NCBI GenBank assembly: GCA_977017575.1
Contig: CDRNVI010000159.1
Coordinates: 1-55,953, forward strand
Source: Paramoeba atlantica
Lineage: Eukaryota > Protista > Discosea
DNA: 55,953 nucleotides
Direction of reading: 5' to 3'
Each line of letters opens with the position of its first letter. Within the stretch, counting starts at the first letter, position 1. The position numbers were made by a program, and so were the translations under genes. Of this stretch, positions 26,111 to 49,378 are shown one piece after another. A model generated the notes under the pieces. The model saw only the letters and a program-made list of their open reading frames with translations, was not told the origin of the DNA and ran no database searches.

Positions 26111-26130
26111 CTTTTTTCTTTTTGCTAATT
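25915..26130. repeat. Polypyrimidine tract including a long poly-T run
   Basis: T/C-only stretch with a T run around 26068-26110. Confidence 0.8.
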
Positions 26131-27389
26131 TTCCTCTTTTGCCTCTTTCTCTCTTACCAAAGTATTGTTGGGGGTTTAGGGGTAATATTATGGACCACAT
26201 CTAATTAAGTTTACAAGCTTTTTTCCCTTTCCTTTCATTGCTCCTCTTTTTTTCCTTCCCTTCCTCCCTTTCTTTGTGTTCAATTTGCTTTCTTTTCTTT
26301 TGTTTCATCTTTGACACATCCTGTCTGTGTGTGGCCAAAATCTACTCTTTTCTTTTCTGATTTATTTTTTTTCTTTTACTTTCTCTTTTGTTTTTTGGAG
26401 TTTAAAATAATAAAAAAGAAAGGTTAAAGGTTTGTTTTGTTTTTTTGAAAAATCAAAAAAATATTAATAAAAAAATCAATTTTTGATTTGTTTTATTTTT
26501 TGGTTTTTTTGAAAAAAAATGAAAAACACAAACACACAACATAATGATCACAAATGAAAAACAAACTAATATCACCTTAACAACAAACAAAAAAACCATT
26601 AACCCTTTCTTTTATCAACACAACTATTGCACAAGTCTTTGAACTTATGGAGAGTTGACCTCCTCCTTTCAGCAGTGGTGTGGTGCCCCTCCGTCTGTGT
26701 AAAGATGGCAAGAAGATGAAAAATCTGAAAATTGAAACACTAGGGTTTAGAGTTGTTATTTGGTTGTTGTTAGTTGTGTTGTTGCCTCTTTATGCTTGGT
26801 GAATCAGCAAACACTTTTATTTTTTCTTGGAAGAGGAGGGGAGGAGATGTCTCTTTAAGGTTAGAGTTTAGACTTCAATTTTCAGTGTACCAGTAAGCTG
26901 CTTTTTAAATTTTTTTTTTTTGTTTTAAGAACTCTGCCAACATAGCGATAGAGTTTTCTTTTGTTTTCTTTCTTCTCTAAACCCACAAATATTCTAACAA
27001 AAAAAAAACAAAAAAATTCTTAAAAATTCTCAAAAAAATTCTCAAAAAATTCTCAAAAAAAAATAAAAAAAATTCTCACAAAAAAAAAATAAAAAAAAGC
27101 AGAGTTCCTACCCCCTCCCATTTTTCAGGTACAAAAATCTCTTTTTTGAAGATACTTTTTTTTGTTTTTTTTTGAGAATTTTTTGAGAATTTTTTATTTT
27201 TTTTTTTGTTTTTTTTTGTTTTTTTTTTTTATTTTTTTTTTTTTTTTTGAATATTGAACACATTTTTTATGTTAGTTTCTTTCCATGTCCCATAAAGTCC
27301 TTTTTCCCTCTTTTTGTCAAAAAGACCGCCGAACATACTGGTGTTTACAAAAAAGAGAAGAAAAAAAAGCAAAAAAGTGAAAAGTACAA

Positions 27390-28470
27390 ATGACGAATGA
27401 GGACAATTTTTACTTAACAGCATTTCAATGCAACCCCCCTTCCTCTTCTTTACCACCTTTGAGAAAGAAGGAAGAGAAGTTTACGATATTACTACCTTTT
27501 TCAGTTTCTATTCCAGAGCCTTTCAGAAATTATTATTTTTCCTCCTCCATTCTCAGCAGCAGCAACAGAAGCAACCTTTTAAACCCTCTCAACAAACCTG
27601 GAAAAGAATACAAAATTTTTCCCTTTTTTTCACTTCATGAATATCATATCTTTATGAACACAAACCTTCCTCAACCACTTCTAACATTTCCACTAGTTCT
27701 TTCCCAATATTTGAGCATCTTCTTTTTCTTTTTGAAGAATTCTTGTCATTTTTCACAAAAACAAACTTCAAAAAATTTTGATCTTAAAGGAACAATTATG
27801 ATTGGATATACTGTTAATGCAATTAGGGCAACAGGTTTTTTCTTTAATTTTTTTTTCTTTAATTTTTTATCTCTTTTTTCTTTGTTTTTTTCGTTTATCT
27901 TTTTTCTCTAACTTTATTTTTGTTTCTTTTTCGTCTGTTCGTCTTACACCCTAACCCACTCCCTTTAATTGTTTTCCCCTAATTTTGGATTAGGTTTTGA
28001 AAAACCCCACAATTTTGTCCGCCATTTTAGAGTTGCTAATAATCCACTCGAACAAAAAATTCCCCAATGGAAAAAACAATTATGGCTTCAAGGGAAATAC
28101 CTATATTCTCTTCTTGATGATCACTTCACTTCTGGGGAATTTGTAATCTATGTTTCTTTAATAACATTGAATGACCAATTAGTCAAATGGCACTCTAATA
28201 AATGTAATATTACATTTCAAATTGTTATTTTTTTAGGAATGTTTGTCGGTGAGAGTTTTTTTGAATTTGAAGACCCAACAGGAGTATATACAATTCGAAT
28301 TCCAATTATTCCAGGAACAATAATTGTTTTTGATGGATGTTTGTGACATTGAAAAATTGCAATGGAAAGTTTTTGTAGGGAATAATATACTATTATTTTT
28401 TTTAAAAATTATGACCAGCAATTCTCTTCCCTGGATAATATTATGTGGCCTCCTCACTTTTATCATATTT
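27390..28470 (+). pseudogene. TET/JBP-like 2OG-Fe(II) dioxygenase pseudogene, copy 1 (intron 27835-27993)
   Basis: Spliced frame gives KNFDLKGTIMIGYTVNAIRATG/FEKPHNF...VKWHSNKCNITFQIVIFLGMFVGE...IPGTIIVFDGCL*H*KIA. HSNKCN is HxDxxD after G>A changes. Paralog of 46826-48088 with the same intron position. Confidence 0.7.
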
Positions 28471-30459
28471 CTTATAATAAAAATATTCTTTTTTTTTAAA
28501 TTCAAAAAAATTCAAAGATTTTTAATTGTTATTTTTATGGTAGGTGGTTTCAGGGTTTAAGGTTTTAGAAGAAAAAGAATCAAAAGAAGAAGAAAATCAA
28601 CAAACATCAAACACCAATTCACCAATTTTCTCTTCTTGATTTCGATTCAAATATTAATTCTTTGAAAAAAAAAAAAATTGACACAAAAAAACAACAATAA
28701 AAAGATGTCTTTTTATTCAGGACATCAATTTTTTTTTTCATTTTTTTTTTTTTTGTTTTTTTTATTTTTGAAATGAAAAAGGAGGTTTGGATTTTGGGTT
28801 GTTCTGGTGATCCTTTTGTTGTGTTGTCCAATGTTTGGCAGTTTTGTAAGTATTAAGAGGGAAAGGAGAGGAAGAAGATGTGTTATGATGATGGCAAACC
28901 ATGAAAGAAGGGAGGGGGGGGAAAGAAGTGGTGTTAAGATGAGGAAAGATCATCTCACACAATAATTGATACATGTAGTTGTTGTTGTTTGTTGTTGTTT
29001 GTTGAGAGAGCAAACATCAAGCTTTTCAGCAGTGATAAATCGTTTCTTTTTGCTGGTTTGTTCTAATTTGATTATTATAAAAGAAGAGAAATATATCTTT
29101 ACTGACTTATGTAATTAGTGATTTATTAAAGAAAATCAATCAACGGCATTCAAAGAAATTTAGGGTTTTGAAGGGGGGAGGAGAGAGAGAGTGAAAGAGA
29201 CTCGAGAGAAGAGAAAGAAAGAGAAAGAGGTTTCAAGAAGGTTTTTTATTTTTTTTTTTTTTTTTTAATTTAAAACAATAAAATAATATTTTTTTTATTT
29301 TATCCTTCAAAACACTAATTCAATATTCCTTTTTCTTTTTTTCTTTTTTTAAAGGAAGAGACGACAACGATAATATAACAGCAGGAGTTGAATATAATGA
29401 AGAGAAAAAAAAAGAAAAGATTAAGTTGAATACTTAATTTATTTTTTTTTTTCTCTCATTTTGAGTTTCAAAACAAATAAAAATCAAGAGAAAAAGGGAA
29501 GGGGGGTGGAGAGAGAGAGAGAGGAGTTCAAAAGTTGTGTTTCTTCTCTCTCTTCTTCTAATGTTTGAATAATATTGAGGAGGGTTTAAGCTCGAAAAAA
29601 GGTTTTTCTTTTCTTTTTTTGTTTCAAAGAATTCTTTTTATTGTAAAAGATTAATTTTTTTTTTTTTTGAAAAAAAGAAAAACGTTTTTGTTTTTGCTTG
29701 TTTTCTTTTTTTAGAGGTACACATGGAAAGACTAAGGTGTGGTGAGAGAGAGCAAGGACAACGATAACCTTTTTGAAAAGGTTTTTTTTGAATTTTTTTG
29801 AATGTTGGCTTGACTTTTCATTTCACTTTCGTGGTTGGAAAGAGCTTTTTCTCTTTTTGCTAAAAGAGTACACGTGCAAAAACAAAGAGTTTTCTCTCTT
29901 TTTTCAAGTAACCAACAACACCAACTCAAACAAACAAGCAACACACACTCACTCCTCCCCCTCCCTCTCTTCTTCTTTAGACGATTGGTTTTTGAGGTAT
30001 TATTTTCAACACTTCCCTTTGAGTGAATATTGTTTTTTGTTTTTATAAGAGTTTTCTGGTTTTCTGGTTTTTGGTAATGATTAAAAATGAATTTTAACTC
30101 TCTTTTTTTCTTATTGTTAGAAGAGACACGAAGCAGCTTAAGATAAGCATCCTTCCTCCCTTCTCCCTCCCCCCCTTCTCCAATCCTTTAGAAGAAAAGA
30201 GAGCATTATCGCGTGTCGTATTGTATCATATCATATCGTACATTGTGTCTAGGTGTGTGGTGTGTGTGAATTAGTAGAGTACACTCTTTATTTTTTTGTT
30301 GGCCAGTGTAGTGTAGTTCCACACTTTGGTGTGTAATCTTTCACCCAATTCGAGAGAATTATCCATCCACCATTTGCTCCACTCTCCCTCCCCCAAAATA
30401 ATACATATATGCTGGCTGGCTGGCTGGCTGGCTTGTAAAAAGGATTTATTCTTTACAGT

Positions 30460-33400
30460 ATGATGTTTTTCTCGCTTGATCACCTTGTGTTTTCACAGTT
30501 GGTGAAACAAGATTATGATTTAACTCGATTGTTTCCACCACCTCATAATGATGATCTGTTTTCCCAGCAGCAGCAGCAGCAGTATTCTTCTCCTCCTCCT
30601 TTTATGATTGTTAGAGGTTCACAGACTCAATATGTGATTTTTGTGTGTGGTCATAGTTTTATCCCAACTGCTGAAAAAAAGAGTACGAGTACTTCTGAAA
30701 AGTATTATTGGATAAAGAAATCTTTCTTGAAACAATGTCAGACAAAATCTTGCGATCCTTTGGTGATGAAGAGGTGTTCACTTGATTATGTTTCTCAATT
30801 TTTATCTTTCTCGCATATAACTTATCAAAGACTTCCTATCTTCGAAGGAGCTGTTCTACAAGGGACACTTCATTTCTCTTTTTGTTCTGAATGTAATAGT
30901 GTTGTTTGTAAAAGGAAAAGTGATTTATCAAAGAAAAAACATGCAAATGGTTGTACTTGCACTTCTTTGAACAGTCAAGTGGTGGTGGTGTATCAATAGA
31001 AAGGTGTTTTGTTTGATGGGTGTCCAACTTCTTCTTCCTCTTCTTTGTTCGAATTGACAAAAAGAGAGCAGCAGCAGCAGCAACAGAAGCAGTTTTCTTG
31101 TTCTTGTTCTTGTTTCAAGAATTCTCATCATGGTTGTTGTTCTTGTTCTTTCCCTCATTCTTATTGTTCTTCTTCTTTTGAGTCAGATCCTCCTTCTTCT
31201 TGTTGTTGTTCTTTTCTTCTTGAGACAACCACAAGAACAACAACTGACAACTCAACAACAACAACAACAACAACAACAATGAAAACAGAGGAGGAGAAAG
31301 CTGCTGCTGGTACTGCTGCTGCTGCTGGTACTGCTGCTGCTGCTGTTGGAGGAAGGAGAGAAGGAAACAACTCTGTCTCCTCTCTTTGTTTGATGTTGAA
31401 TATGAACCTGAATGAAAAAGATATGTTTTTACCATATGCGTTGAGAACAACAAATTCTGTTGAGAATGGTGGTGGTGGTGGTGGTGGGATTACAGATTAT
31501 TCATTAAAGGAAAGTCAATTTTGACAGAAACAGCTTCAAGCTCTCGATAATTCAGCTGTTGGTTCTTGTATTCCTTCATTCTTCAAACCTTTTTTGAGCT
31601 TCAATGAGATGATACCTTTTTCTTCTCATCACCATTATCGAAATGATGGTGGTGGTGGTGGTGGTGGCAGCAGCAATGGCAGCAACAGAAACAGCAGTAG
31701 GAGTTGTGGTGGTGGTAGTATGAATAAGAATCACAGCAGGTTGTTGTCTGGGTCTGGTGGTGGTGGTGGTGGAATTATTGAACCTTAGTTAAATTCATCA
31801 CCTTATAAAAATCCATTACTGGAGGTTTTGATTTCAGTTCTTTTTGAAGGAAAAGCATTTGTTTTGGGTGAGCTTTCAGTTTCAATGTGAAGAGATATTT
31901 ATTGAATTTGAACAAAAGGAGGAAATTGGGATCTTTCAATGGGACAATCTTCAGATGAAACAGTATTTTCAAAGGTTGGGCAATCAGATCAGACAACAAA
32001 ACAATATGCTTAGCATCTTCTTTCTTTATTTGAGATGATGGGAATTGATGTAGTAAGGGCTTGTGTTGGTGTTCCGGTGAGTGGTGGTGGTGGTGGTTGT
32101 GGTGGTTTTGATGGTTTAACTAAAAGAGAAGCAATTCTTTGGTTGGCTTTAAATATCTTTTCATATGCACATTGCTTGATTGGCTCGAAGTTTATTTCTC
32201 ATTCGATATCCAATGTTGTTGCCAAGTTTCTTCGAAATGGTTCTTCTGTTCATAATGATGAATTCTCCTCTTCCTCTTTTTCGTCAAACCGTTTTTCTTC
32301 TTCTTCTTCTTCTTTATCATTTCCATTGAATCATTTGAAGAAGATATTGTATGCACTTCAAATGATGGATTTATACCTATACCCTCTTGTACTTAATATT
32401 TTTGATGTTAATGTTGATGAAAATATACAAAGTCACATGATTCAGCGCTGTCGTTATAAGATTGTTTATCTTTGTCAACGACTTGGAGAGGAAGAGAAGA
32501 AGCAAGAGAAAAAAAGAAAACCAGATATTGTTTATGAAGTTGAAAAAGAAAAGAATCTTCTTCATATTTCTTGGAAAGATATTTTTTCTTTTTGTTGGAC
32601 AATTTTGTAAGTTCCAGTCATTTCTTCTTCTTCTGTTTCTTCTTCTTCCTCAATAACTCCTCGTCCTACTGCTATTGGAGAAGAAGCAACAAGAATGGCA
32701 GTGGAAAGAGGAGTGGGGCTGATGAGAACAGCAACAGGAGGAGTGAGAACATTGGCAACAAAAACACCAACAACAGAAGAGAGAATAGTGATGGAGATAG
32801 AAAGAGAAGAAGAAGAAGAGGAGGTGGTAATGAGAATGGCAGGAGGAGGAGGAGGAGGAGGAGGAGGAAGAGGAAGAGGAGGAGGAGCATTAACATTAAC
32901 AGAGGAGGAGGAAGAGGGAGAAGAGGGAACAACACCAACACAAAAGCAGGCACCATCACCACCACTCTTATTAAAGACAGTAAGAGGAGTGGGGGGAGAG
33001 GTGAAAATCTATCAATCAACCCTTTCAGCCATTGTTAAAAAACTGAAAGATATTCTTTTACAGTTTCTTCGATCTTTAAAGTTGAATTCCCTGTACCAAA
33101 ACCACGTATGGATGCCAAATGGTCTGGTAATTGCTGCTGCTGCTGCTCCCTCTTCTTCTACAAACAATCCACTGAAACCAATTACACAAAAATCAATTGT
33201 TTTGAATGATGATCTCAGCAACAGCAACAGTGGTGGTGGGGGTCATGGTGGTGGTCATGGTGGTAGTGGTAGTGGTTTTGGTGGGTTCATTAAGAAAGAT
33301 GATTAAAAGCAATTTTATTATTTATACATTCTGTACCACTACTTTTCGTCTGTGTTGACACCTCGAAAATGCGAATTTTCCTCTCTTCATTCACCAAACT

Positions 33401-35781
33401 CATTTTGTCAATGGAAACCAACTTCGAATTACCCAATTGTATTTCTTTTGGATATTAAGAAGAAGAAAGCAAGTCAATTAATCAATATTTCTTTTCTTGA
33501 TAAGTTGGCTTCTTTTTGTTTTGCAATTGATTGATAGTATCTTATTTCAATGAGTGAGGTGGTTTCAAAGTGTGAGACATGGACCTTGGATCCAGTATTA
33601 ATTGATTTGATTCTTCGTTCTCTTTTTCAGATAAGCAAATTACCCTCTGATAAAGTTCTTGAATTTCGAATACTTCAGCAAATGAAGTTAACTTGCCAAA
33701 ATGTTGTTTTTTGTAATGGTGGTAGTGGTGGTGGTGGTGGTGGTGGGGGGGGGGGGAGCGAACAACACTTCCCCCCAAAAAGTTGTTTTGGAGGAAGAGA
33801 AGGAGGAAGAGGTGGTGGTGATGAAATATTTTCTTCCTCTTCTTCTTCTTCTTCTTCATCCTCGATTTTTTCAATGTTAGCAACTGGAAATGGATATTTT
33901 TTTCAAACATTTCGAACCTCTTATGGATTTAAAAAAGAGACAAATGTGGATTTGAAATGGAGTTTCTTGGAAGAGCTTTGTACTCAATGGAGAGATTCAT
34001 TACATGCTGCGGCAACAATAATTTTACCAACTGCTGCTTCCCCCTCCCCTGGACCACCCTCCTCTTCCTTCTCCTCCTCCTCCTCGTTATTGCTGCCTCC
34101 ATTACCTTTTTCTTCTTTGATGACCTCATCATTATAGTATATGGAAGATTACTACAAAGAATTTATTGAGGCAAAGGGATGGAAAGAATTGAAACCAGAG
34201 CAAAAAGAAGATTTGATTGTGATTTCTTTAAATCACCACACTCTTATTTCTCGACCTTGTAGATTTAGGAAGTCAATTTATTATGAGTATTTTGCTTTTT
34301 CTCATGCAAAGATGAGAGAAAGAAGAGGAAGAAGAAGAGAAAACTTAAAGCAACAACAACAACAACAACAATCTGATAACGATAATGATGATAATAATTT
34401 TTTGCACCACCACCATCACCATCCTCTTCTTTTAGTTGTTCCAATGATTGCTTTTAAATTACAATCTCTTTTAATTCTTTCATCTCTTCCAACAATTTGA
34501 TGTGCGATTCTTTGTTCACAATATTTTGAACAACAACAACATCAACAAAAAAAAAGAAATGAGAAGATGTGTGGCGGTGGTGATGATGATGAAATTGATA
34601 TTTTTATTGCATGTCCTGAAGTTTTGACTATGAAAGAATTTATTGAGTGGTTAGATCTTCAACAATATGAACAATAACAAAAACAAAAAAGAACACAAAG
34701 GAGAGGAAGGAGAGAGGAAGAGGAAGAGGAGGAGAAATTTGAAGAAGAAGAAGCTTCTTCTTCTCTCAGAACAACAAATACAAATCCCACCCCCCCCTAT
34801 ATTGCTGCTGCTGTTGCAACTAATTCTTCTTCTTTGGATTTGTTGAAAAAAATCTTTTTGTTTATTTTTATTGATGAAGCTCATCTCCAATGGTCTGCTG
34901 GTCCTTCGTATTGCTTGAGCTATCTTCACTTGAGAACCACTTGTCTTAAAATTGAAGAAAAAGTTATCGAAATGTCAGGAACTTATGATTCTTCAATGTT
35001 TGAAGAAGAGATTAATGCAATTGATTGTGGGAAAGGAAAGAATGTTTTTCATGCAATTCAAGGATCTGTTGATCTTTCTGCTTCTCTTTCGAATTTTCCG
35101 AATGATGTGTTTGTTTATCCTTCCAAGGAATGCTTGGATGGAACAAAAGAAAATCTTCTTACTTATGTTTTAATACAAGTCCCCCGTGCTCAATGTCAAG
35201 TTTTGATTTATTGTCGTACAAAAAGTCAAGTCTCTGAGGTTTATTACTATTTTAAAAAATCTGATAAGTTATTCGTGTGATACTCAGATAAATGATATTC
35301 AAATGTTGTTCTTATCCCCTTTTCTTCAGACTATCGAAACAATTCAACACACTTGGAAAATATGAAATCAGTTCTTTCTTCCTCTTCATCACAACCACCA
35401 CGAAAAGAAGGAACAACAGCGGCAGCAGTGGAAAGTACTTTTATTATCATTGGAACTTCAACAATTTGTTAAGCATGTGACTTTCTAGTTCTTTCTTATT
35501 TATTGATGATGGATGTATCCTTTTCAATTTTGGATACTTTACAACTTTGTGGCTGAGTGACTCGAGGGAACTGAACTCCAGGAAAAATTGTTTTATTTAC
35601 TCCTCCTCCTCCTCCAAAATTTCTTCTTTCTTCAAAAAGGAAAGAGGAAGAAGAGGGTGAATCAATGATTTCATCTAATTCTTTTTTTCCTCTTGTTTCC
35701 TCATTATCATCAACAGTAGCAGTGCCACTGCTCCTCCCTTCCTCTCTTTCTTCTTCTTCTTTTTCTTCTTCTTCTTCTAAT
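30460..35781 (+). pseudogene. Large single-frame gene: Zn-finger + tyrosine-recombinase-like + RecQ-like SF2 helicase (telomere-linked-helicase-like), inactivated by ~19 in-frame stops
   Basis: All ORF-track pieces at 30460, 31009, 31594, 32035, 32695, 33352, 33550, 34141 and 34834 share one frame. RecQ motifs: KELKPEQ, PCRFRKS (from PCGFGKS), VPMIA, IACPEVL, DEAH, MSGT, LIYCRTK, IGTSTIC*ACDF, QLCG*VTR. The RecQ call is strong; the recombinase-like call is weaker. Confidence 0.8.
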
Positions 35782-38700
35782 TAGGGTTTATAGCTCTTGC
35801 CTAGTTCAATCTATTATTTTATAGGTTTAGGCTCTTTACTCCCTTTAAATCAATATTTTTTTTTAAAAGTCTTTTTGCAACATTAGGTTTTCCTGCAACT
35901 TAGAATTTCTTCTTTTTTTTAATTTTTCTTTAAAGAAAAGATTTTTATTTAAAATAAATGGTTGTAAGAGAAAGAAAATGGTTTCTTAAAAAAATTGAAA
36001 AAATAAATTCATTCAATTTATTTTGAAAAATTATTTATTATTTTTTTAAAAAAAACAATTGAAAAAAATTAAAAAGAAAAAAAAAAAATAGAAAACAAGT
36101 TGAAAGAGAAATAAGAAGGATTTAAAGAAAGAAAAAAGAAAAAAGAAAAAAATTCAAACAAAAAAAAGGTTAACAAAAAACATAAAAAAAAAGGAAATAA
36201 TACAATAGAAAAGATTTTAATCTATTCTTCTCTTTCTTTTGATAATAGTAACCAACACAAGGTTCAATTAATACAATAGAAAAAAAAGCAAAACAGCTTA
36301 ACATAACAAGAAGAAAAGTGAAATCCATAAAGTTCACTTAATAATTCACCTTTAAATAAAAAAAAAATAATATAAGAAAAAAAAAAGAAAAAAAATGAAG
36401 GATTTTTGATCTCTCCAAAAAAAAAAAAAAAAATATGAATCAATCAAGAATTGAACCCATCACTCCAGGCTGGCTAAACTATGCACCTCAAATCATGAAT
36501 TTATTAATCATCCAAACTAACCCTATCACTTCCATTCAAGACCTCAAAAAAAAAGTTCCACCTTAGCAAATAAACAGTTCCAACTCAATTTTGAACAAAT
36601 CTTTGAAAATTAGAATTCTGAAAAACAATCTTTCTTTTTTGGAATTCCAAAAAACAAAATACTCAGAATCCAGCCAAACACAAAAAAAAATTCATTTTTA
36701 GAATTTCAAAAAACACAAAAACCTTGTTTTCTCTTGAAAAGATAAAAAAATGAAAGAAAAAAATATAAAAAGATACAAAAAGACTCCCAAACCAAAAAAA
36801 CAACAAAGCTTACAAAAAAAACTTGAAAAAAAGAAGAACAAATCTTGTTTCTCTCTCATTCTTCAACTTTTCTGAAACTCAAAACACAAGAAAAAAACAA
36901 AAAAGAGTGGTAAATCAAAAAAAAAAACCAAAAAAACTGATATGGACATGATTTTTTTTGCAGATTTGAAAGGAATAAACAGGATTGATTTGGATGATTG
37001 ATAAATTCATGACTCAAAGTGCATAGGGTTTAGCCAGCCTGGTGTGAAAATAAATCGATTAAAAGTCTCGTCACAGAAGGATTTTGACTCTCCAAAAAAA
37101 AATTAAAAAAAATATGAACCAATTAAGAATTGAATGAAAAATAAATTGATCAAAATTCTTGTCACAGAAGGATTTTGACTCTCCAAAAAAATTAAAAAAA
37201 AAAATATGAACCAATGAAGAATTGAATCCAAAAATAAATCGATCAAAATTCTTGTCACAGAAGGATTTTGACTCCCCAAAAAAAATTAAAAAAAAAATAT
37301 GAACCAATTAAAAATTGAACAAAAAATAAATTGATCAAAATCTTTGTCACAGAAGGATTTTGACTCTCCAAAAAAATTAAAAAAAAAAATATGAACCAAT
37401 GAAGAATTGAACCCAAAAATAAATTGATCAAAATTCTCATCACAGAAGGATTTTGACTCCCCAAAAAAAATTAAAAAAAAAATATGAACCAATCAAGAAT
37501 TGAACCCAAAAATAAATTAATCAAAAGTCTGGATTTTGACTCCCAAAAAAAAAATAAAAAATTAAAAAATAAGAACCAACCAGGAATCAAACCAAAACAA
37601 AGAGAGGTGTTATATTATTCAAGAGCAACAAATATATGAAAGCAAAACTTTAATAAAAATGGATTGATAATACAACAGAAAAATAATATATTAAATATTA
37701 ATAATAAATAATCATCCCCAAAATATTAATAATTTTCATAATAAGAATTTCACACAAAGAACAAACAAAGAACAATAAATAATTAATCAACAACAACTAA
37801 TTACCATAAAAGAAGTAAACCTGATTTAGCAGCACTCAAAAATGACTCCAAAAAGCAATGATATTTTTGTTCGGGGAGAGGCAGATAGGTGATAGTTGAC
37901 ATCTGACCACAACAACAACACAACAGCAGCAGCAATTGATCATTCTATTTTATTTCTTTAAAAGAGAGAAAGAGAAAAGAAAATGAAAAAAAAAAGAAAA
38001 AAGTACTTGCAAAAGAGATTGAAAAAAAAGAGAGAAAAAAAAATTGCAAGGACGACAAATTTGGGGAGAAAAACTTCCTCTGCCCCACAACTATACTCTA
38101 TTAAAAGAAAAAAAGATTTAAAAAGAGAGAAGAGAGAGAATAAGGTTATTAGAGTTAAAGATGGGGAGATATCAACGAAAGAGAAAAGGAAAAGAGGGGA
38201 AAAGTGAAGATTTGGGGGGGGGGAGGGGGAGGGGGGAAAGGGAAAATGTCAGAGGATTGATGAGATCTCCACAGAAAATAAACAACAAAACAATAAATGA
38301 AAGTCAATCTAAAGATCAAATTGAAAAAAAGCAGAAGGTGTGGTTTATATCAAATAAAAGGAACAACAAAAGAAAGAAAGAAAGAATAGGGTTTTGAACA
38401 AAAGAGAAAATATTCAAAGAGAGAAAACACAGAAAAAATCAAATGTGACAAAAAACAAAAGGATGAATCAAAACACAGCAGGCAGGATTGTTGTTGTTGA
38501 AGGAGCACCAATGAAAGACAAAAGAGAGGGAAAAACACAAAAGAGGAAAACACTTCAAATAAGAAAGAACAATCAAAGTGAGAAGAAAACACAAATTTTT
38601 GAGGAAAAGGTAAGAAAGGAGACAAGAGAAAAACAAAAGAGGGGAGAATCAACTAAGGGGAGATTCGACAGGAAAGAGCAGTGAGAAAGACTTCAAAATG

Positions 38701-38966
38701 AATAGAAGACAACAAAACAAGGTAGAGATTTGAAATACAGAATAAGGTGGAAAGGGAAAGGGGAAAAAGGGAAAAAAGGAAGAGCAAAGAGGACACAAAA
38801 AGAGAAAGAAAAGAATGAACAAAAGAACAAAGAAAGAAGAACAAATAAAAAAGACAAAACAAACAAAAGGATGAAGAGAACCACATCTCAAGCCTCATCC
38901 ATCATAATACCCAAGAAAGGAAAAATAAACATGACAAAAACAAGTGTGACGAACAAAGGTTTAGGG
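35782..38966. repeat. Subtelomeric duplication unit 1 (~3.2 kb), bounded by telomere-like sequence
   Basis: Begins TAGGGTTTA-TAGCTCTTGCC and ends GAACAAAGGTTTAGGG. Colinear with 38967-42438. Confidence 0.92.
37070..37560. repeat. ~92-bp tandem array, 5 copies (unit 1)
   Basis: GTCACAGAAGGATTTTGACTC(C/T)CCAAAA..ATATGAACCAAT..GAATTGAACCCAAAAATAAA recurs at ~37070, 37161, 37255, 37346 and 37439. Confidence 0.9.
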
Positions 38967-38984
38967 TTTAGGGTTTAGGGTTTA
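38958..38984 (+). repeat. Interstitial telomeric repeat (~3.5 x TTTAGGG)
   Basis: GGTTTAGGGTTTAGGGTTTAGGGTTTA at the junction between duplication units. Confidence 0.9.
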
Positions 38985-41900
38985 TAGCTCTTGCCTAGTT
39001 CAACCTATTATTTTATAGGTTTAGGCTCTTTACTCTCTTTAAATCAATATTTTTTTTAAAAAGTCTTTTTGCAACATTAGGTTTTCCTGCAACTTAAAAT
39101 TTCTTCTTTTTTTTTATTTTTCTTTAAAGAAAAGATTTTTATTTAAAATAAATGGTTGTAAGAGAAAGAAAATGGTTTCTTAAAAAAATTGAAAAAATAA
39201 ATTCATTCAATTTATTTTGAAAAATTATTTATTATTTTTTTAAAAAAAACAATTGAAAAAAATTAAAAAGAAAAAAAAAAATAGAAAACAAGTTGAAAGA
39301 GAAATAAAAAGGATTTAAAGAAAGAAAAAAGAAAGAAGAAAAAAATTCAAACAAAAAAAAGGTTAACAAAAAACATAAAAAAAAAGGAAATAATACAATA
39401 GAAAAGATTTTAATCTATTCTTCTCTTTCTTTTGATAATAATAACCAACACAAGGTTCAATTAATACAATAGAAGAAAAAGCAAAACAGCTTAACATAAC
39501 AAGAAGAAAAGTGAAATCCATAAAGTTCACTCAATAATTCACCTTTAAATAAAAAAAAAAGAATATGAGAAAAAAAAAAGAAAAAAAATGAAGGATTTTT
39601 GATCTCTCCAAAAAAAAAAAAAAAAATATGAACCAATCAAGAATTGAACCCATCACTCCAGGCTGGCTAAACTGTGCACCTCGAGTTGTGAATTTATCAA
39701 TCATCCAAACTAACTCTGTCACTTCCATTCAAGGCCTCAAAAAAAAAGTTCCACCTTAGTAAATAAACAGTTCCAACTCAATTTTGAACAAACCTTTGAA
39801 AATTAGAATTCTGAAAAACAATCTTTCTTTTTTGGAATTCCAAAAAATAAAATACTCAGAATCCAGCCAAACACAAAAAAAAATTCATTTTTAGAATTTC
39901 AAAAACACAAAAACCTTGTTTTCTCTTGAAAAGATAAAAAAATAAAAGAAAAAAACACAAGAAGATACAAGAAGACTCCCAAACCAAAAAAACAACAAAG
40001 CTTACAAAAAAAACTTGAAAAAAAGAAGAACAAATCTTGTTTTTCTCTCATCTTTCAACTTTTCTGAAACTCAAAACACAAGAAAAAAACAAAAAAGAGT
40101 GGTGAATCAAAAAAAAAACCAAAAAAACTGATATGGACATGATTTTTTTTGTAGATTTGAAAGGAATAAACAGAGTTAATTTGGATGATTGATAAATTCA
40201 TGACTCAAAGTGCATAGGGTTTAGCCAGCCTGATGTGAAAATAAATTGATCAAAAGTCTCGTCACAGAAGGATTTTGATTCCCCAAAAAAAAATTAAAAA
40301 AAATATGAACCAATTAAGAATTGAACGAAAAATAAATTGATCAAAATTCTTGTCACAGAAGAATTTTAACTCCTCAAAAAAATTAAAAAAAAAAAATATG
40401 AACTAATAAAGAATTGAACCCAAAAATAAATCGATCAAAATTCTCATCACAGAAGGATTTTGACTCTCCAAAAAAATTAAAAAAAAAAATATGAACCAAT
40501 GAAGAATTGAACCCAAAAATAAATCGATCAAAATTCTTGTCACAGAAGGATTTTGACTCCCCAAAAAAATTAAAAAAAAAATATGAACCAATGAAGAATT
40601 GAACCCAAAAATAAATTGATCAAAATTCTCGTCACAGAAGGATTTTGACTCCCCAAAAAAAAATTAAAAAAAATATGAACCAATTAAGAATTGAATAAAA
40701 AATAAATTGATCAAAATTCTCGTCACAGAAGGATTTTGACTCCCCAAAAAAATTAAAAAAAAAATATGAACCAATGAAGAATTGAACTCAAAAATAAATC
40801 GATCAAAATTCTCGTCATAGAAGGATTTTGACTCCCCAAAAAAATTAAAAAAAAAAAATATGAACCAATGAAAAATTGAACCCAAAAATAAATCGATTAA
40901 AATTCTCATCACAGAAGGATTTTGACTCCCCAAAAAAAATTAAAAAAAAAATATGAACCAATAAAGAATTGAACCCAAAAATAAATCGATCAAAAGTCTG
41001 GATTTTGACTCCCAAAAAAAAAATAAAAAATTAAAAAATAAGAACCAACCAAGAATCAAACCAAAACAAAGAGAGGTGTTATATTATTCAAGAGCAACAA
41101 ATATATGAAAGCAAAACCTTAATAAAAATGGATTGATAATACAACAGAAAAATAACATGTTAAATATTAACAATAAATAATCATCCCCAAAATATTAATA
41201 ATTTTCATAATAAGAATTTCACACAAAGAACAAACAAAGAACAATAAATAATTAATCAACAACAACTAATTACCATAAAAGAAGTAAACCTGATTTAGCA
41301 GCACTCAAAAATGACTCCAAAAAGCAATAATATTTTTGTTCGGGGAGAGGCAGATGGGGTGATAGTTGACATCTGACCACAACAACAACACAGCAGCAGC
41401 AGCAATTGGTCATTCTATTTTATTTCTTTAAAAGAGAGAAAGAGAAAAGAAAATGAAAAAAAAAAGAAAAAAGTACTTACAAAAGAGATTGAAAAAAAAG
41501 AGAGAGAAAAAGATTGCAACGATGATGACAAATTTGGGGAGAAAAACTTCCTCTGCCCCACAACTACACTCTATTGAAAGAAAAAAAGATTTAAAAAGAG
41601 AGAAGAGAGAGAATAAGGTTATTAGAGTAAAGATGGGGAGATATCAACGAAAGAGAAAAGGAAAAGAGGGGAGAAGTGAAGATTTGGGGGGGGGGAGGGG
41701 AGGGGGGGAAAGGGAAAATGTCAGAGGATTGATGAGATCCCCACAGAAAATAAACAACAAAACAATAAATGAAAGTCAATCCAAAGATCAAATTGAAAAA
41801 AAGCAGAAGGTGTGGTTTATATCAAATAAAAGGAACAACAACAACAATAAAAGAAAGAATAGGGTTTTGAACAAAAGAGAAAATATTCAAAAAGAGAAAA

Positions 41901-42438
41901 CACAAAAAAAAATCAAATGTAACAAAAAACAAAAGGATGAATCAAAACACAGCAGGCAGGGTTGAAGGAGCACAAAGCACCAACGAAAGACAAAAGAGAG
42001 GGAAAAACACAAAAGAGGAAAACACTCCAAATAAGAAAGAACAATCAAAGTGAGAAGAAAACACAAATTTTTGAGGAAAAGGTAAGAAAGGAGACAGGAG
42101 AAAAACAAAAGAGGGGAGAATCAACCAGGGGGAGATTCGACAGGAAAGAGCAGTGAGAAAGACTTCAAAATGAATAGAAGACAACAGAACAAGGTAGAGG
42201 TTTGAAATACAGAATAAGGTGGAAAGGGAAAGGGGAAAAAGGGGAAAAAGGAAGAGCAAAGAGGACACAAAAAGATAAAGAAAAGAACGAACAAAAGAAC
42301 AAAGAAAGAAGAACAAATAAAAAAGACAAGACAAACAAAAGGATGAAGAAAACCGCATCTCAAGCCTCATCCATCATGATACCCAAGAAAGGAAAAATAA
42401 ACATGACAAAAACAAGTGTGACGAACAAGGGTTTAGGG
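38967..42438. repeat. Subtelomeric duplication unit 2 (~3.5 kb)
   Basis: Copy of unit 1. The extra length comes mostly from a longer 92-bp array. Ends GGGTTTAGGG. Confidence 0.92.
40261..41030. repeat. ~92-bp tandem array, 8 copies (unit 2)
   Basis: Same unit as 37070-37560, at ~40261, 40351, 40446, 40540, 40631, 40721, 40813 and 40908. Confidence 0.9.
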
Positions 42439-44265
42439 TAGCGAATAAAAGACACACAAACAAAAGGAAAAGAAATCAAAAACCCAAAAAAAAAAGGAAA
42501 GGGGGGAGAAGAGGAGAGAAAGGACTAAAACAAAAAAAAAAAAACACTGAGAGGAAACAAAGAAGAAAAACCTGATCACATAGGGGAGGGATAATGTTCT
42601 GAGCAATCCACACCACAATTCTTCCTTCCTCTCTCTCCGTGTGTGGTTTTTGAAGCAATCTCTCACCTCATCAAGATCAACTCTTTTTCTCTTTTTTTTA
42701 CACACACAAAGAAAACAAAAAAAGAGTTGTTTGATGAAAGAAGCAAAAAAAAGTCTCTTCCCCTTGCCGCCCTCCTAACTTTGACTCCCTCCATCACCCT
42801 CCCCCGAACAAGCAATAATTGATCATTCTATTTTATTTTTTTAAAAGAGAGAAAGAGAAAGAGAAAGAGAAAATGAAAAAAAAAAGAAAAAGTACTTGCA
42901 AAAAAGATTGAAAAAAAAAAAAAAGAGAAAAAGATTGCAACGACGACAACGAAAAGGAGAAAAACTTCCTCTGCCCCACAACTACACTCTATTGAAAGAA
43001 AAAAAGGTTTAAAAAGAGAGAAGAAAGAGAATAAGGTTATTAGAGTAAAGATGGGGAGATATCAACAAAAGAGAAAAGGAAAAGAGGGGGAAGTGAAGAT
43101 TTGGGGAGGGAAGGGAAAGGGAAAATGTCAGGATTGATGAAATCTCCACAGAAAAACAACAAAACAATAAACGAAAGTTAATCCAAAGATCAAATCGAAA
43201 AAGCAAAAGGTGTGGTTTATATCAAATAAAAGGAACAACAACAACAAAAGAAAGAATAGGGTTTTGAACAAAAGAGAAAATATTCAAAGAGAGAAAACAC
43301 AGAAAAAAATCAAATGTGGCAAAAAACAAAAGGATGAATCAAAACACAGCAGACAGGGTTGAAGGAGCACAAAGCACCAACGAAAGACAAAAGAGAGGGA
43401 AAAACACAAAAGAGGAAAACACTCCAAATAAGAAAGAACAATCAAAGTGAGAAAACAAATTTTTGAGGAAAAGGTAAGAAAGGAGACAGGAGAAAAACAA
43501 AAGAGGGGAGAATCAACCAGGGGGAGATTCGACAGGAAAGAGCAGTGAGAAAGACTTCAAAATGAATAGAAGACAACAGAACAAGGTAAGGGTTCACAAC
43601 AGAAAAGGGTTTAGGGAAGGGAGAGTGAAAGGGAAGGGGGAAAAGGGGGAAAAGGAAGAGCAAAGAGGACACAAAAAGACAATAAAGAAAAGAACGAACA
43701 AAAGAACAAAAAAAGAAGAACAAATAAAAAAGACAAGACAAACAAAAGGATGAAGAGAACCGCATCTCAAGCCTCATCCATCATGATACCCAAGAAAGGA
43801 AAAATAAACATGACGAAAACAAGTGTGAAAAACAAGGGTTTAGGGTGGCGAACAAAAGACACACAAACAAAAGACACACAAACAAAAGACACACAAACAA
43901 AAGACACACACAAACAAAAGACACACAAACAAAAGGAAAAGAGATCAAAAACCAAAAAAAAAGGGGGGAAAAGAGGAGAGAAAGGACAAAAAAAAAAAAA
44001 CACTGAGAGGAAATAAAGAAGAAAACCTAATCACATAGGGGAAGGATAATGTTCTGAGTTCTGAGCAATCCACACCACAATTCTTCCTTCCTCTCTCCGT
44101 GTGTGGTCTTTGAAGCGATCTTTCACCTCATCAAGATTAACTCTTTTTCTCTTTTTTTTATACACACAAAGAAAACAAAAAAAGAGTTGTTTGAAAGAAG
44201 CAAAAAAAGTCTTTTCCCTTTGCCCCCTGACCGCGACTCCCTCCATCCCCCCCGAACAAGCAACA
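41400..44265. repeat. Second-level ~1.4-kb tandem duplication (41400-42812 / 42812-44265)
   Basis: The block ATTG(A/G)TCATTCTATTTT..CAAG(G)GTTTAGGG occurs at 37931, 41401 and 42815. The following block GCGAA(T/C)AAAAGACACAC..CCCCGAACAAGCAA occurs at 42441 and 43849. Confidence 0.85.
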
Positions 44266-44675
44266 GCATGTTTTTCAAGGTGAAAAACAAAAAAAAAATA
44301 CAAAAAATAAAAGATTTTTGGGCAGTAAAATATCGAATCAGATTTTCTTGTGAGTATTTTTGTTATTTTCATTTTATTGAAAAAAACATAAAAAATAAAA
44401 TATAAAAATTCATCTACTCCAAAGCCGAAAGGTAGTAAAAAGGCTGACGTATATTTTAGAGTGCTAAAAATAAATGATGAATTGCTTTTTCATGTGAAAA
44501 GGTGCAAGACAGCTTTTTCGGGAAGAAAAGTCAAAAAGACCCCTTTTATTTTTTCTTTTTTTTCTTTGTTTTTTGTTGTTTTTTTGGGTGTTTGAAGTTG
44601 CTCAGAGTGAGTTGGGAATTGTATTTTTTAGTCTTGAAATTTGTTCTTCTCTTAAAAGAAAGACTAAAAAAGAAA

Positions 44676-46680
44676 ATGTCTAAGGCGAAAATTCCACAAA
44701 GAAAGAAGAAGTCGCGGTATGGGGACAGAAAGCACAAGCTTGGCAGAGGTCTTGAAAAATGGAATGCTGAACGAGCACAGGCGAAGTCACATGGAAACCC
44801 AAAACCTGGAGTCCAATTTCATCAGGTAAGAATTCCTCAACCCTAATCACAGTATTTGGTTGACAGAATCAATCCAGAATCAGTCTGATGAAGGTATCAT
44901 TGACAATCCACTGCAGCTGAGTGATCAGAGGAGCACCCAACCCAATCATCCCCAATCTCATTCAGCCAACGTCGAAAAAGTATGTTTTTTTAAAGTTTTT
45001 TAATGAAAGAAAAGAAAGTTTCTCTTTTTTTTGGTAAAGAATTTTTTTTAGAAAACTCCAATCGTTGTGGGAAAAGTAAAAAAGGGACAAATAAGAAAGA
45101 GAAAAATGAGTAAAAAAGCGATCTCAAAAATGAAAAGTGAGGCAGGGAAAAAGGGGCAGCAAAGAAAAAAAGAAATTGCACTTGCCCAGAGCAAGGAGAC
45201 TGTGAAGAAGTTTGGTGAGAAGAAACAGAAAGAAGAGGGAAAAAAGAGGAAGAAGAGGGAAAAAAGAGAAGAATCAAAACAGCAGCAGCAGGCTCGACCA
45301 AAAAGAAGAAAAAAGAATGAAGAAGAAATTTCCTTGGGTGATGCTTTGAAGTGGGTGATTGAGAGTCCAGAGTGGAAAAGTTTTTTTAAAGAAAAGGAGG
45401 ATCGATTGATTGAAGATTTTTTTGGGGAGAATGCAATTGTTATTCCAGGAGGGGTTCGTAAAAGTCAGGTTGTCTTACAAGAATACTTGAACTCCCTGCT
45501 GGAACTCCACCCTGATTGGCTTGAACGAGTTCTTGTGTCTCTAGGTGAAGAAAAGATGTTGGGGATGATGAAAAACATGGCCACAAAATTAGAGAAGAGT
45601 GGGAAATCTCAGAAAGAGAAGGAAGCAGAGGAAGAAGAAAAGAGGTTGGAAGAGGGAATTAAGAAATTGTTTGGTGTGTTGCAATTCTCACCGAAACAAT
45701 GGGATCGAGAAATCAGGCCAATTTTTCGAGAGATGTTCCTGCTGAAGAAGAAGTCAAAGAGGGATTCTCTTTTGTCTGGTTCTAAATTGAAGAACTTGGA
45801 GATTGAAGAGATGAGGAATTTGATCGAAAAGATGGGGATTTGTTATGAGTGGCGGAAGTATTCTTCTCCTGACTCTGATGGAATGGGTGGTGAATTTGCA
45901 GTTGCATGGAATTTCACCGATGATTTTTTTCCCTTGGCTTCTCTCTTTCCCTCAAGTAAGAAAGAGACTGAATTTACCAAATAGGGTTTGGAATTCAATT
46001 TTTTTATTTTCACACCACACACACAAACAACAACAAAGTTGTTGGAAAATGAAATAAAATATTTTTTTAAGAATTTTAATTATTCTCTTACACACACAAG
46101 ATGTTAATTGTAACCGAAAATATTGACACTTATGCGCAATATTGATTTTCTGAAAGTGGTGAGAATGAATACACTCAATATCAAGTCAATGTTATCTCAG
46201 AACTATGGTTGCCTCGCTCCCTTGCCCTCTTGATCCCTTTTATGCAAGTCCAAACAAAAGATAATCATGAAGCAATCTCCTCTCTTTTTGTCCATGTTAT
46301 AAAAGAGATGAGATGTCTTCAAGAAGGTTTTGATGTTGAGGTAGAGGAGGAAGGGGGGGACCAAAAAAACTGAAAAATACCGGCTTATCTCAGTTGGGAC
46401 TCACAATGGGCATTTTCGACGAATTGCTCTTGGAATGTCGAGTGCTTCAAGTGCATGGACCCGTTGGGAATTTCTCTGGTCCATCAAACCCAATTGGGAA
46501 TTTTTTCTCTTGAAGTTTCCCCCACATGGCCAAGAAGTCATGGAGTGTGATGAAGAAGATAGGTCTCCGAAATAAACAGAGTTTTCTTGATTCCTCTCCT
46601 GTTGCCATGACCAAAAAAAAGGACATTTCATCTGTCAGAGAACTTTTTAAATTCAATTCTTCCTACCTCCCAATAAAAAA
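44676..46680 (+). pseudogene. Spliced, truncated DDE transposase-like gene resembling RAG1/Transib/Chapaev cores
   Basis: Open 305-aa exon with FSPKQWDREIRP. It continues as LIVTENIDTYAQY..PRSLALLIPFMQVQTKDNHEAISSLFVHVIKEMRCLQEG..AYLSWD, then in another frame RIALGMSSASSAW. This is the order of RAG1/Transib motifs. The third catalytic residue and TIRs were not found. Confidence 0.55.
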
Positions 46681-46825
46681 ATAAAGAAAAAGTAGAAACC
46701 TAGTGATTAAAAAAGCTCCAATTTTGGGAGGAGATTTTTTTTTTGTTGCTTGAGCTTTTTACGGAGCGATTTTTTTCGTTCGATCAACAACGGTAATATT
46801 CGTGAGAAGAAAAGGGGAAGAAGAG

Positions 46826-48088
46826 ATGGCGAAGAAAAAAGTGATGGAGAAGCTCTCTGATGAAGAGGAAGCCAAAAGGTACCATCAGGAGAAAGCAAGA
46901 GAATTTCGCCTCAGAATTAAAAGCTTATCAAAAGAAGAGCGGAAGAACTGGGTCATCAAAAAAAGGGGTCCCAGGAAGAAGGAGAAGGGGAAGCAGGTGC
47001 TGTTGTATCAACAACAACAACAAACTGGCCTTGCCACACCTTCTTTGGAAACAACATTGAAGCCTTCCTTTTCGATCATAATCCCAACACTCTTTGAACA
47101 ATATCCATCCGAATTCCCAGTCTCCAGTTTCTTGCAGAACAGAACCCAATCCAAAAAATCTTTCCTTTTAACTCTTCCGATCTACTCTCTGCGAAAGTTT
47201 CATCTATTTACACAAACAGCCCCTTCTTACCCTCCAAGCACTCTTCTTTCTTTCTTTCAAAAAGAAGATCCACAAAAAGAATCCATCGAACGACGTTTGG
47301 TCATCTTTTCTTCCTTTTTAAAGGAAAATTGTCATGGGAAATTATCCAAATCAAAGAGATCGAAAAACTTTGATCTTGAAGGATCAACTATTGTTGGGTA
47401 CACTGTTAACGCCTTTGGTGCAACAGGTTTTTGTATTTTTCTCATTGGCCAACCCACACAACCATAACCCCACACGCTCACACACACACACCAATTTTAA
47501 AAGGGGCTCGGTAGATCCTCTCTTCTCACATGGTTTTTTTTTGTGTCCCACACAGGTTTTGAGCGCCCCCATAATTTCGTGAAATCTTTGGGTGTTTCAA
47601 AAAACCCTTTGGATCAGGTCACAGTTCAAAAGCAGCTGTGGTGAAAAAAATTGTGGCTCCAAGGAAGTCTCATTTGTGAGCAGATTTGTCCATCCTTTGT
47701 TTGTGGTGAGTTTGCTCTTTATCTCTCCTTGATGACTTCAAATTCGCACTCTGTGAAATGGCATGACGATCCTTGGGACATCACTTGGCAGATTGTGATT
47801 TTTTTGGGGGAGTTTTCTGGAGGGACAAGCTACTTTGAGTTTGAGGACCCAACAAGAAGTTTTACGATACAAATTCCAATCTATCCAGGAACAATCATCA
47901 TCTTTGATGGACAGTTGCCACATCGCAAAGTTGCAAAGGAAGATTTTCATGGATCCCAGTATACCACAATATTTTTTAAAAATTTTGATTGAACGAAAGA
48001 AAAACCAGATGATCTTCTGCTGTGGCCTCCTCGATGCTATTGTTGTTCCTTTCTCCACCGAACTGGAGGGTTTCCAAGTTTGAAATAA
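46826..48088 (+). pseudogene. TET/JBP-like 2OG-Fe(II) dioxygenase pseudogene, copy 2 (intron 47427-47555)
   Basis: WHDDPWD (HxDxxD, 47762-47770), FLGEFSGG, PGTIIIFDGQLPH (distal His at 47921) and GSQYTTIFFK (expected Arg reads CAG). TGA stops at 47642 and 47990. Confidence 0.75.
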
Positions 48089-49378
48089 CTCTCTCTGCAC
48101 TTGGCACCACCCATCACACATCCCCATTTACTCCTCTTCACCAACCCCCAACCACCACACAGTCAACCACACCAAAGCCCCTCTCTCTCTCTCGCACCCA
48201 GATTTTTCACAAAGAAAACTTTTGAGGTGTCCCCTTCACAACAAGTCACACTCATTTTCACTCAGTCCAAGCTCTCACCATGGTGTCCTGCACATCTTCT
48301 TTCTCTTGCTTCCGTTTTGGTGGAAAATGGTCAATTTGGAGTTTCTTGCCACCCCCTTTCAGAACATTTCCAACTTTTTTTGAAAATTTCTCTTCAGCTA
48401 TTTTTTCAAATGAACCTTTGTGCACAACCTCGAATCTTAAGATCTCTTATTCTCCATTCTTGAGTGGAGTTTCCTCACACCGAAGTGAAGGTAGTACCAG
48501 CTCTCTTATGCCCTCTTTTCTCTCCATTCGTTTGATGATTGATAGATCATTTCTTTTTTGTTTTTGTTTTCTTTTTGTTTTCTCCTACTCCCTCCTCTTG
48601 ATGTCCTTTTTGTTCTCTTTCTTCTCACCAAATAAGATTCTAAAATTTTGTTTCCTTAGTTTGAACAGTTTTTACAATGTTTTTTTTGGTTTTCTTTTCT
48701 TTTCTTTCTTTTCTTCTTTTTTCTCTTTCTCTTTCTTTTTCTTTTCTTTTAATTGTTGTTCCAAACTGATTTTTTTTTTCGAAGGGAGATGAGTTTTGTA
48801 ATCAGCAAGTAAATATATTTGTTAAAAAAAAGAATCATATTTCTCTTCTTCAAAGGCTTTGTTGTGTGTTCACTCTCCTTTTCTGGTTTTCTTTTTCTTT
48901 CCTCTTTTCCCTCTCTTTTCCCTCTCTTTTCCCTCTCTTTTTTCTCTTTTTTCCTGATTATGTTTTTTTAAAAAAAAGAGAAATGTCATTGTTATTGTTG
49001 GATAATTTCTTGACTTCTTGTGTTCTGGAAGTGTGCTGCTGTTTCACGACGTGTTGTTCCTAAAATATTCGACAATAATTTTTCAAAAGCCCCAAACAAT
49101 CATCTGGTTTTCTTTCTCTCTTTTTTTTGTTTTTTGAACTGACAGTTCTCTGTTTTTTTTTGTTTTAATTAATCCACACCAACTTCTATAATAATATATT
49201 GTTGTAAAATTCATTGGTTTTATTTTTGTTTTTGTTTTGTTTTTGTTTTACTTTGTATTTCTTCACTTTTCCCCCTTACATTGAACTGAATGAAATCCTT
49301 TCTCTTTTCTTTTTTCTCTTTTCTCTTGTCTCTTTCAGTTCTCATCAGGTTTGTGAGGTGTTTTAATTGATAAGGGTT

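Follow-up and report, generated by a model that had tools for sequence, protein, structure and literature searches.

Two dioxygenase-like genes lie in the outer part of contig CDRNVI010000159.1 of the Paramoeba atlantica assembly GCA_977017575.1, and we wanted to define what they are and whether they come from enzymes that modify DNA bases. The window considered here is the whole stretch of 55,953 nucleotides (nt) of this contig. An initial annotation, made from the sequence alone, had described two genes, here called copy A and copy B, as paralogues sharing an intron and had proposed that they belong to a multicopy, transposon-linked, subtelomeric family of TET/JBP-like dioxygenases. Our reading, to which we give a probability of about 0.7, is that A and B are decaying copies of a two-exon subtelomeric gene whose protein carries a beta-helix domain nearest to that of Naegleria Tet1, that the ancestor was a 2-oxoglutarate (2OG) dioxygenase, probably acting on a nucleic-acid base, and that the copies are being eroded by GC-to-AT changes. 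Judged from its sequences, this is a real, unannotated, multicopy and subtelomeric family of putative Tet-like 2OG dioxygenases, the function of which can only be inferred.

Copies A and B and their relatives at chromosome ends

Both copies were checked across the window by translation and inspection, and searches were run with the exon sequences taken separately. The two gene models and the telomere at the end of the window are as follows.

27390..27834, forward strand: copy A exon 1, with its ATG at 27390 and a low-complexity, basic, Ser-rich N-terminal part; it ends in KNFDLKGTIMIGYTVNAIRAT plus the first base of a Gly codon.
27835..27993, forward strand: copy A intron, 159 nt, GT..AG, T-rich, phase 1.
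27994..28499, forward strand: copy A exon 2, a dioxygenase-like double-stranded beta-helix domain, pseudogene; terminal TAA at 28497-28499.
46826..47436, forward strand: copy B exon 1, with its ATG at 46826 and a Lys/Glu-rich basic N-terminus; it ends in KNFDLEGSTIVGYTVNAFGAT plus the first base of a Gly codon.
47437..47555, forward strand: copy B intron, 119 nt, GT..AG, at the same codon and in the same phase as in copy A.
47556..48088, forward strand: copy B exon 2, a dioxygenase-like domain in which WHDD...PH is retained; terminal TAA at 48086-48088.
55370..55953, forward strand: telomere array (TTTAGGG)n, 83 copies, with the G-strand running 5' to 3' outward to the end of the window.

The motifs listed in the initial annotation across both exons are all present where it had placed them. 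Copy B exon 2 matches copy A with an E-value (E) of 8.9e-37 and 57% identity, and copy B exon 1 matches the A-type exon 1 at E 2e-17. Copies A and B are paralogues, as had been proposed, with a similarity far above chance. The shared intron also stands: in both copies it runs from GT to AG and falls behind the first base of one and the same Gly codon (GATG/FE(K/R)PHNF, the slash marking the split). Intronless relatives, namely an internal paralogue on contig C156 and proteins from metagenomes, read WSFHxGYTxxxxGxxxFxxPH unbroken, and the end of exon 1 (IGYTVNAIGAT) followed by the start of exon 2 (FEKPH) aligns to them with zero residues gained or lost. Because these relatives have exactly the spacing that splicing would give, the intron model is supported.

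Neither copy is intact and both are pseudogenes. Copy A, whose exon 1 is 95% identical at the nucleotide level to the intact copies of contigs C137, C189 and C208 and whose exon 2 has its intact counterpart at L002:1420-1920 (minus strand), carries three in-frame stops (TGA 28344-28346, TGA 28350-28352 and TAA 28383-28385). In addition, its HSD has become HSN (Asn codon at 28197-28199), and the Asp that serves as Fe ligand is gone. Copy B has two in-frame stops (TGA 47642-47644 and TGA 47990-47992) and a Gln where the dioxygenase family has a conserved Arg. The HxD motif is found in copy B (WHDD) and lost from copy A (HxN), and the two genes of the initial annotation are two broken copies. An alternative genetic code, in which TGA would be a sense codon, was considered and ruled out: JBP1 and JBP2 of this genome and the intact family copies have long stop-free frames, and the stops of decayed copies fall at CGA, CAA or CCA codons of the intact ones.

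The whole assembly (45.7 Mb in 248 contigs) was searched for further members of the family. The count came to ten subtelomeric copies, one internal intronless paralogue and two fragments, which bears out the idea of a multicopy family. Three copies, on C137, C189 and C208, are open and 100% identical to one another across 2.7 kb. Open copies consist of two exons, with 184 codons in exon 1, the split Gly codon, and 167 codons in exon 2. The copy on C186 has an open frame too but reads HFN in place of HxD. Stops are present in six of the ten copies, and stops or a damaged HxD in seven. The internal paralogue, at C156:222.5 kb, shows 29% identity, and the fragments (C177:284918-285055 and C204:20265-20402; E 3e-8, each with a TAA stop) are C-terminal pieces of the dioxygenase-like family that stand apart from the ten main copies.

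Position and orientation follow one pattern. For eight of the ten copies the distance to a contig end is no more than ~10 kb, all ten are directed at the nearer end, and telomere repeats are found at the relevant end of six of the nine contigs carrying copies. The window ends in an outward telomere array, ~7.3 kb from copy B and ~27 kb from copy A, and therefore both copies are subtelomeric; together with the mapping of the paralogues, this agrees with the location first suggested. On many chromosome ends, a copy of the family is the last or nearly the last gene before the telomere.

The mutation spectrum was scored on seven distinct A-type copies, taking their majority consensus as reference. 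C>T and G>A account for 102 of the 106 singleton changes within the gene. Over 2.7 kb comprising the gene, its intron and the upstream and downstream DNA, GC-to-AT transitions make up 197 of the 219 private changes, and only 5 are AT-to-GC transitions. The intact copy has 31 CpG, of which the worst copy has only 2 left. Where copy A has its three stops, the intact copies read CCA, CGC/CGA-type and CAG/CAA-type codons, and each of the two TGA stops of copy B is one transition away from TGG or CGA. The GC-to-AT process is region-wide and not gene-specific, and it is destroying the copies. A scan of the genome made exon by exon, which does not establish absence, detected no C5 cytosine methyltransferase (PF00145), and because none was detected the GC-to-AT hypermutation of subtelomeric repeats stands as an unexplained, genome-defence-like phenomenon. 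The mutation pattern of the terminal block that carries the A-type copies resembles that of a RIP-like (repeat-induced point mutation) or deamination-like process.

Fold and nearest relatives of the exon 2 domain

No Pfam match was obtained for any exon piece, for the intact copy or for the C156 paralogue, and the family has no Pfam model. An exhaustive profile search retrieved 315 representative clusters at E <= 1e-3, 179 of them at E <= 1e-10, and none of the family clusters that were looked up carries a name. The family signature is HxDxxDIxxQ...DGRxxH...GxRY. Across 149 sequences its columns are near-invariant: H in 145, D in 143, D or N three residues later in 139 and 9, Q in 139, the Arg of DGR in 140 and the distal H in 141. 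Another Arg is near-invariant, being present in 131 of 138 aligned relatives. The Fe(II) triad HxD...H is found in the intact A-type protein (WHSD...RLRH), in copy B (WHDD...LPH) and in 141-145 of the 149 relatives; it is broken in copy A of the window (HSN) and in the C186 copy (HFN).

The AlphaFold (AF2) model of the intact exon 2, built on a 59-sequence alignment, is a helix-capped double-stranded beta-helix with eight core strands (predicted local distance difference test, pLDDT, 93.5; predicted template modelling score, pTM, 0.87). When it was compared with a wide set of PDB structures by VIA-align, 2OG oxygenases and generic cupins were matched at Z 7-8. Modelled fold and HxD...H triad together indicate that the exon 2 domain is a double-stranded beta-helix of the 2OG-Fe(II) dioxygenase type, in accordance with the initial annotation. 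The predicted structure establishes the fold but does not tell Tet from AlkB, P4H or generic cupins. With two models, Foldseek against PDB returned generic cupins (template modelling score 0.3-0.5) and no discrimination, and a fold search of the Atlas gave mainly unnamed viral clusters. Sequence searches of other kinds added little: phmmer with the intact exon 2 against PDB sequences gave noise only, a word-based protein search with the family alignment gave near-identical fragments only, and tblastn against phage records gave no match. A limited search of the literature found no description of the family or of such a terminal gene.

Among 2OG enzymes, Tet1 of Naegleria (NgTet1) was the only PDB sequence match of the family profiles A1, A3 and A4 (E <= 10, all PDB sequences). 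Its E-value was 0.0088 with a profile of 12 sequences, 6.3e-4 with 59 and 5.6e-4 with 149. The alignment covers ~100 columns and pairs HxDxxD-I, the GxFxG turn, the distal His region and the near-invariant Arg. The margin of NgTet1 is modest, and TET2, CcTet and JBP1 were not reached by the family profiles in PDB sequences. The HxDxxD/N column is aligned with HKDNLD-I of NgTet1, and the JBP1 encoded in this genome has HTDAGD. In NgTet1 and TET2, the third residue past the Asp contacts the flipped base. A language-model search with the intact exon 2 pointed in the same direction, with clusters carrying Tet_JBP on 27-31% of their members (score 0.93, 176-184 shared features), and Tet_JBP-containing clusters are 43 of the 100 matches listed. 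Kinship with TET/JBP is weakly supported by these results, and we read the family as a distinct one on the periphery of TET/JBP, which would have the small Naegleria-type Tets as nearest solved relatives and is a non-member by the curated definition. The TET/JBP assignment of the initial annotation is partly supported.

Relatives from metagenomes give a further lead. P0055, P0099, P0074 and P0100 combine the domain in one protein with others of P-loop kinase-like type (AAA_33, Zeta_toxin, Ploopntkinase3), an architecture that is recurrent and for which no function turned up. P0055 also has a PBZ zinc-finger match, below threshold (18.9 bits, cut-off 22.7), and one WWE and one DBF zinc-finger match were seen among the relatives. 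As a lead only, these fusions fit nucleic-acid or DNA-damage contexts. Moreover, the N-termini of the family proteins are strongly basic. Because of the Tet1 kinship, the P-loop kinase and PBZ fusions of relatives and the basic N-terminus, a nucleic-acid base is the probable substrate. The ancestral protein would have been a working Fe(II)/2OG dioxygenase that probably acted on such a base, and the family may modify bases of DNA.

Substrate, activity and spread of the subtelomeric copies

Several results weigh against this reading. The Pfam model Tet_JBP (PF12851), which scores 125-139 bits on JBP1 and JBP2 of the genome, matched none of the 149 members at E <= 0.01, nor the window copies, the intact copy or the C156 paralogue. 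A comparison of Tet_JBP with other 2OG-FeII_Oxy models had been suggested as a check on the initial annotation; weak matches to PF13640 (2OG-FeII_Oxy_3) at E <= 0.01 were given by 14 of 149 relatives, the best at 9e-6, and none by the window copies or the genome's own paralogues. Run on the genome, the family profile retrieves neither JBP1 nor JBP2. Comparison by hhalign with a 61-sequence alignment of the JBP1 oxygenase was not significant (E 0.054, probability ~1%), and neither was that with the single-sequence JBP1 domain of the genome. In VIA-align, NgTET1 (Z 8.1 and 7.7) is tied with AlkB, a Burkholderia 2OG oxygenase, collagen prolyl 4-hydroxylase (P4H) and others. Among phage protein families, the intact exon 2 matches phrog_274 best (E 1.5e-5), a family filed under nucleotide metabolism with the uninformative label 'DNA endonuclease V'. 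As PF00145 was not detected, a 5-methylcytosine substrate may not exist here. Finally, the near-invariant Arg that aligns with an Arg of NgTet1 is Gln in all A-type copies and in copy B; P0025, which comes from another assembly and represents a third lineage, has Met, and the C156 paralogue keeps the Arg. In 2OG dioxygenases, the C5 carboxylate of 2OG is bound by an Arg or Lys of the last core strand. The canonical Arg is absent in every subtelomeric member examined, and the proteins may therefore be inactive.

These points feed two alternatives. According to one, the family would consist of 2OG oxygenases of proteins or small molecules, like prolyl hydroxylases, unrelated to DNA bases. This would account for weak PF13640 matches in relatives that never match Tet_JBP, and P4H and prolyl hydroxylase domain (PHD) structures reach Z 7-7.8, statistically tied with NgTet1. 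However, PF13640 is a generic model, and the two matches that were examined singly have 18-21 bits for a cut-off of 27. No P4H, PHD or AlkB PDB sequence was reached at E <= 10, whereas NgTet1 was reached at 6e-4 with HxDxxD-I aligned, and the P-loop domains fused to relatives are polynucleotide-kinase-like and accompanied by PBZ. AlkB in particular (PF13532) has Pfam matches in 0 of 149 sequences and no AlkB/ALKBH PDB sequence was reached, so that its likeness is at the level of the fold only (Z 7.3-8.0). We regard a protein or small-molecule oxygenase as unlikely. According to the other alternative, which carries somewhat more weight with us while still being on the unlikely side, the whole subtelomeric clade is catalytically dead, a pseudo-enzyme or junk carried along by end duplication, and the 'intact' copies are its youngest duplicates. 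The replaced Arg would be expected from this, as would the damage in seven of the ten copies, the HFN of C186 included; the identity of the three open copies over 2.7 kb indicates recent duplication, and hypermutation affects coding and non-coding DNA alike. What argues for a protein kept after the loss of the Arg is the divergence between A-type and copy B. In exon 2, pN is 0.29 and pS 0.74 (saturated), with omega (dN/dS) ~0.12, and omega is ~0.47 in exon 1; since the A-type and B lineages share the Gln, the low omega of exon 2 shows long purifying selection on the domain after the Arg had gone. HxD and the distal His are retained in three divergent lineages (A-type, B and P0025), and all three have gained His-Arg-Lys immediately behind the distal His; other family members read His-Glu there. 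This neighbouring insertion might substitute for the lost Arg. The sequences thus point to an altered 2OG or co-substrate site rather than to a long-dead protein, and cofactor use of the subtelomeric clade appears to be either altered or lost.

How the copies came to lie at chromosome ends can be seen from two larger features of the window.

22433..32743, no strand assigned: chromosome-end block carrying copy A, ~10 kb, which includes a 176-bp satellite (23984-25856) upstream of the gene.
44505..48512, no strand assigned: 4.0-kb segment with copy B and an open reading frame (ORF) of 305 amino acids (45067-45984), unique in the genome.

The A-type copies travel with a 10-kb block that ends in telomere. 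The block of copy A is 92-93% identical to the ends of C137, C189, C186, C160, C151, C208 and C174, as well as to a site inside C187. On four of these contigs, the block stops and telomere repeats start at the equivalents of window positions 28592 (C160), 28751 (C208), 29656 (C186) and 30452 (C174), 0.1-2 kb past the stop codon of the gene. The gene is therefore often terminal, and ends have been truncated and healed at different points. Copy A has spread with the ~10-kb terminal block by end-to-end duplication, chromosome ends being broken at different points just past the gene and then healed with telomere repeats. Copy B, with 57-65% amino-acid identity, is an older paralogue. Its segment breaks up a subtelomeric repeat unit, of which at least 10 uninterrupted occurrences are found elsewhere, and at the junctions ~30-38 nt of the repeat unit are replaced, not duplicated.

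The initial annotation had linked the genes to transposons. TET/JBP genes of fungi are carried by transposons (KDZ, Plavaka and others) (PMC12730594), and the genes studied here could likewise be the cargo of a DNA transposon. Besides this precedent and the 4-kb segment, the sole hint of a transposon is a piggyBac-type DDE fragment lying 1.5 kb upstream of one relative, on a contig from a metagenome; apart from that fragment and an RNase H fragment, the neighbour genes of three metagenomic relatives have no Pfam match. However, no Pfam transposase was found in ORFs beside copy A, copy B or the C156 paralogue, and there is no exact inverted repeat of 8 bases or more between the first and last 200 nt of the 4.0-kb segment, the junctions of which show replacement instead of a target duplication. 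The 305-aa ORF upstream of copy B has no Pfam match and no paralogue in the genome, and its language-model neighbours are only noise. The ORFs upstream of the C156 gene are single-copy except for one degenerate partial copy, and they are unrelated to the ORF upstream of copy B. Together with the movement of the A-type copies in a telomere-ended block, this makes transposon cargo very unlikely, and we set that part of the initial annotation aside in favour of duplication between chromosome ends.

The rest of the window records other events. Two tandem units of ~3.2 kb (35781-38967 and 38975-42439), 94-95% identical and each holding a 93-bp satellite (37047-37530; 40238-40999), have exactly three TTTAGGG repeats between them (38960-38980). 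The arrangement resembles a chromosome end that was once healed and afterwards gained further sequence, and C187 has a similar internal telomere tract at ~104.3 kb. Remnants of retroelements are seen in positions 1-20000: 7818-8489 holds RVT_1 and RNase H-like ORFs, 15681-16838 matches RVT_1/zf-RVT, and RVT_3 occurs twice, at 1477-2388 and 16866-17597. Pieces of ~770 bp, inverted or duplicated, lie at 1883-2654, 20434-21161 and 21655-22433.

Comparison with known systems and meaning of the family

Tet1 of Naegleria gruberi (PDB 4LT5, 5CG8, 5CG9) is the sole solved protein that the family profiles reach. Like the exon 2 domain, it is a small single-domain double-stranded beta-helix, it is nominally the top or near-top structural match, and it aligns with the family at HxD, at the Asp-Ile pair that begins three residues on, at the G-F-x-G turn, around the distal His and at the Arg. 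On the other hand, identity is ~14-20%, Pfam Tet_JBP misses the family, and the distal His-to-Arg spacing is one residue different. The WSFHxGYT...FxxPH N-terminal motif and the invariant DGR are specific to the family, and the subtelomeric clade is without the Arg.

JBP1 and JBP2, thymine dioxygenases known from kinetoplastids and other euglenozoans, are encoded elsewhere in the same genome. JBP1 (891 amino acids, aa) has Tet_JBP and DB_JBP1, the J-DNA-binding domain, and JBP2 (1041 aa) has Tet_JBP, SNF2 and Helicase_C. Their loci are C3:215000-222000 and C39:571500-578500, with second copies on C30 and C40; the presence of each on two contigs suggests haplotypes or homeologues assembled separately. 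The oxygenase region of JBP1 has a similar identity (54-63%) to its counterparts in Bodo, Trypanosoma, Leishmania, Euglena and Diplonema. On this evidence the host is a euglenozoan from outside these genera. HxDxxD is common to JBP1/JBP2 and the family, but profile similarity is not significant, and the family protein is ~350 aa long compared with 890-1040 aa and is without the J-DNA-binding or SNF2 domain. Base J is telomere-enriched in trypanosomatids, and no system of DNA-base oxidation is known in euglenozoans other than base J with its two dioxygenases. Kinetoplastid telomeres are TTAGGG. The telomere of Euglena is also reported as TTAGGG (PMC3622300), unlike the TTTAGGG found here. In the present assembly TTTAGGG, the plant/alveolate type, stands at the end of the window and at the ends of C186, C160, C151, C208 and C174, in a genome with canonical JBP1 and JBP2. 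From 4582 overlapping matches to the repeat pattern, the number of telomere arrays is roughly estimated at 48.

As regards arrangement, the Y' elements of yeast and the telomere-linked helicase genes of fungi are subtelomeric multicopy gene blocks. They share with the block of copy A its terminal position, its fixed telomere-ward orientation, its copying between ends, and its variable truncation and healing; the difference is that the proximal gene of the block is here dioxygenase-like. With the transposon-borne TET/JBP genes of fungi (PMC12730594), the family has in common that a small Tet-like dioxygenase has expanded to many copies within one lineage, in DNA that is rich in repeats and subject to C-to-T hypermutation. 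Unlike them, the family described here has no detected transposase, terminal repeats or target duplications and spreads by chromosome-end duplication.

For the window itself, the outcome is the more ordinary one of two pseudogene copies. A bolder proposal, which we consider improbable, is that the family is a third nucleobase-dioxygenase lineage, Naegleria-Tet-like, beside JBP1 and JBP2 in a euglenozoan with base J, expanded as a terminal gene of chromosome ends, modifying telomeric or subtelomeric DNA and interacting with the deamination-like erosion. Its chemistry may be, for example, the oxidation of T to 5-hydroxymethyluracil, or another base oxidation with an altered co-substrate site. 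The present results would give a name to a large unannotated protein family of at least 315 representative clusters, some with nucleotide-kinase-like and PBZ fusions, and, as a further Tet-like family at chromosome ends, it would be a candidate writer or eraser of telomeric DNA marks.

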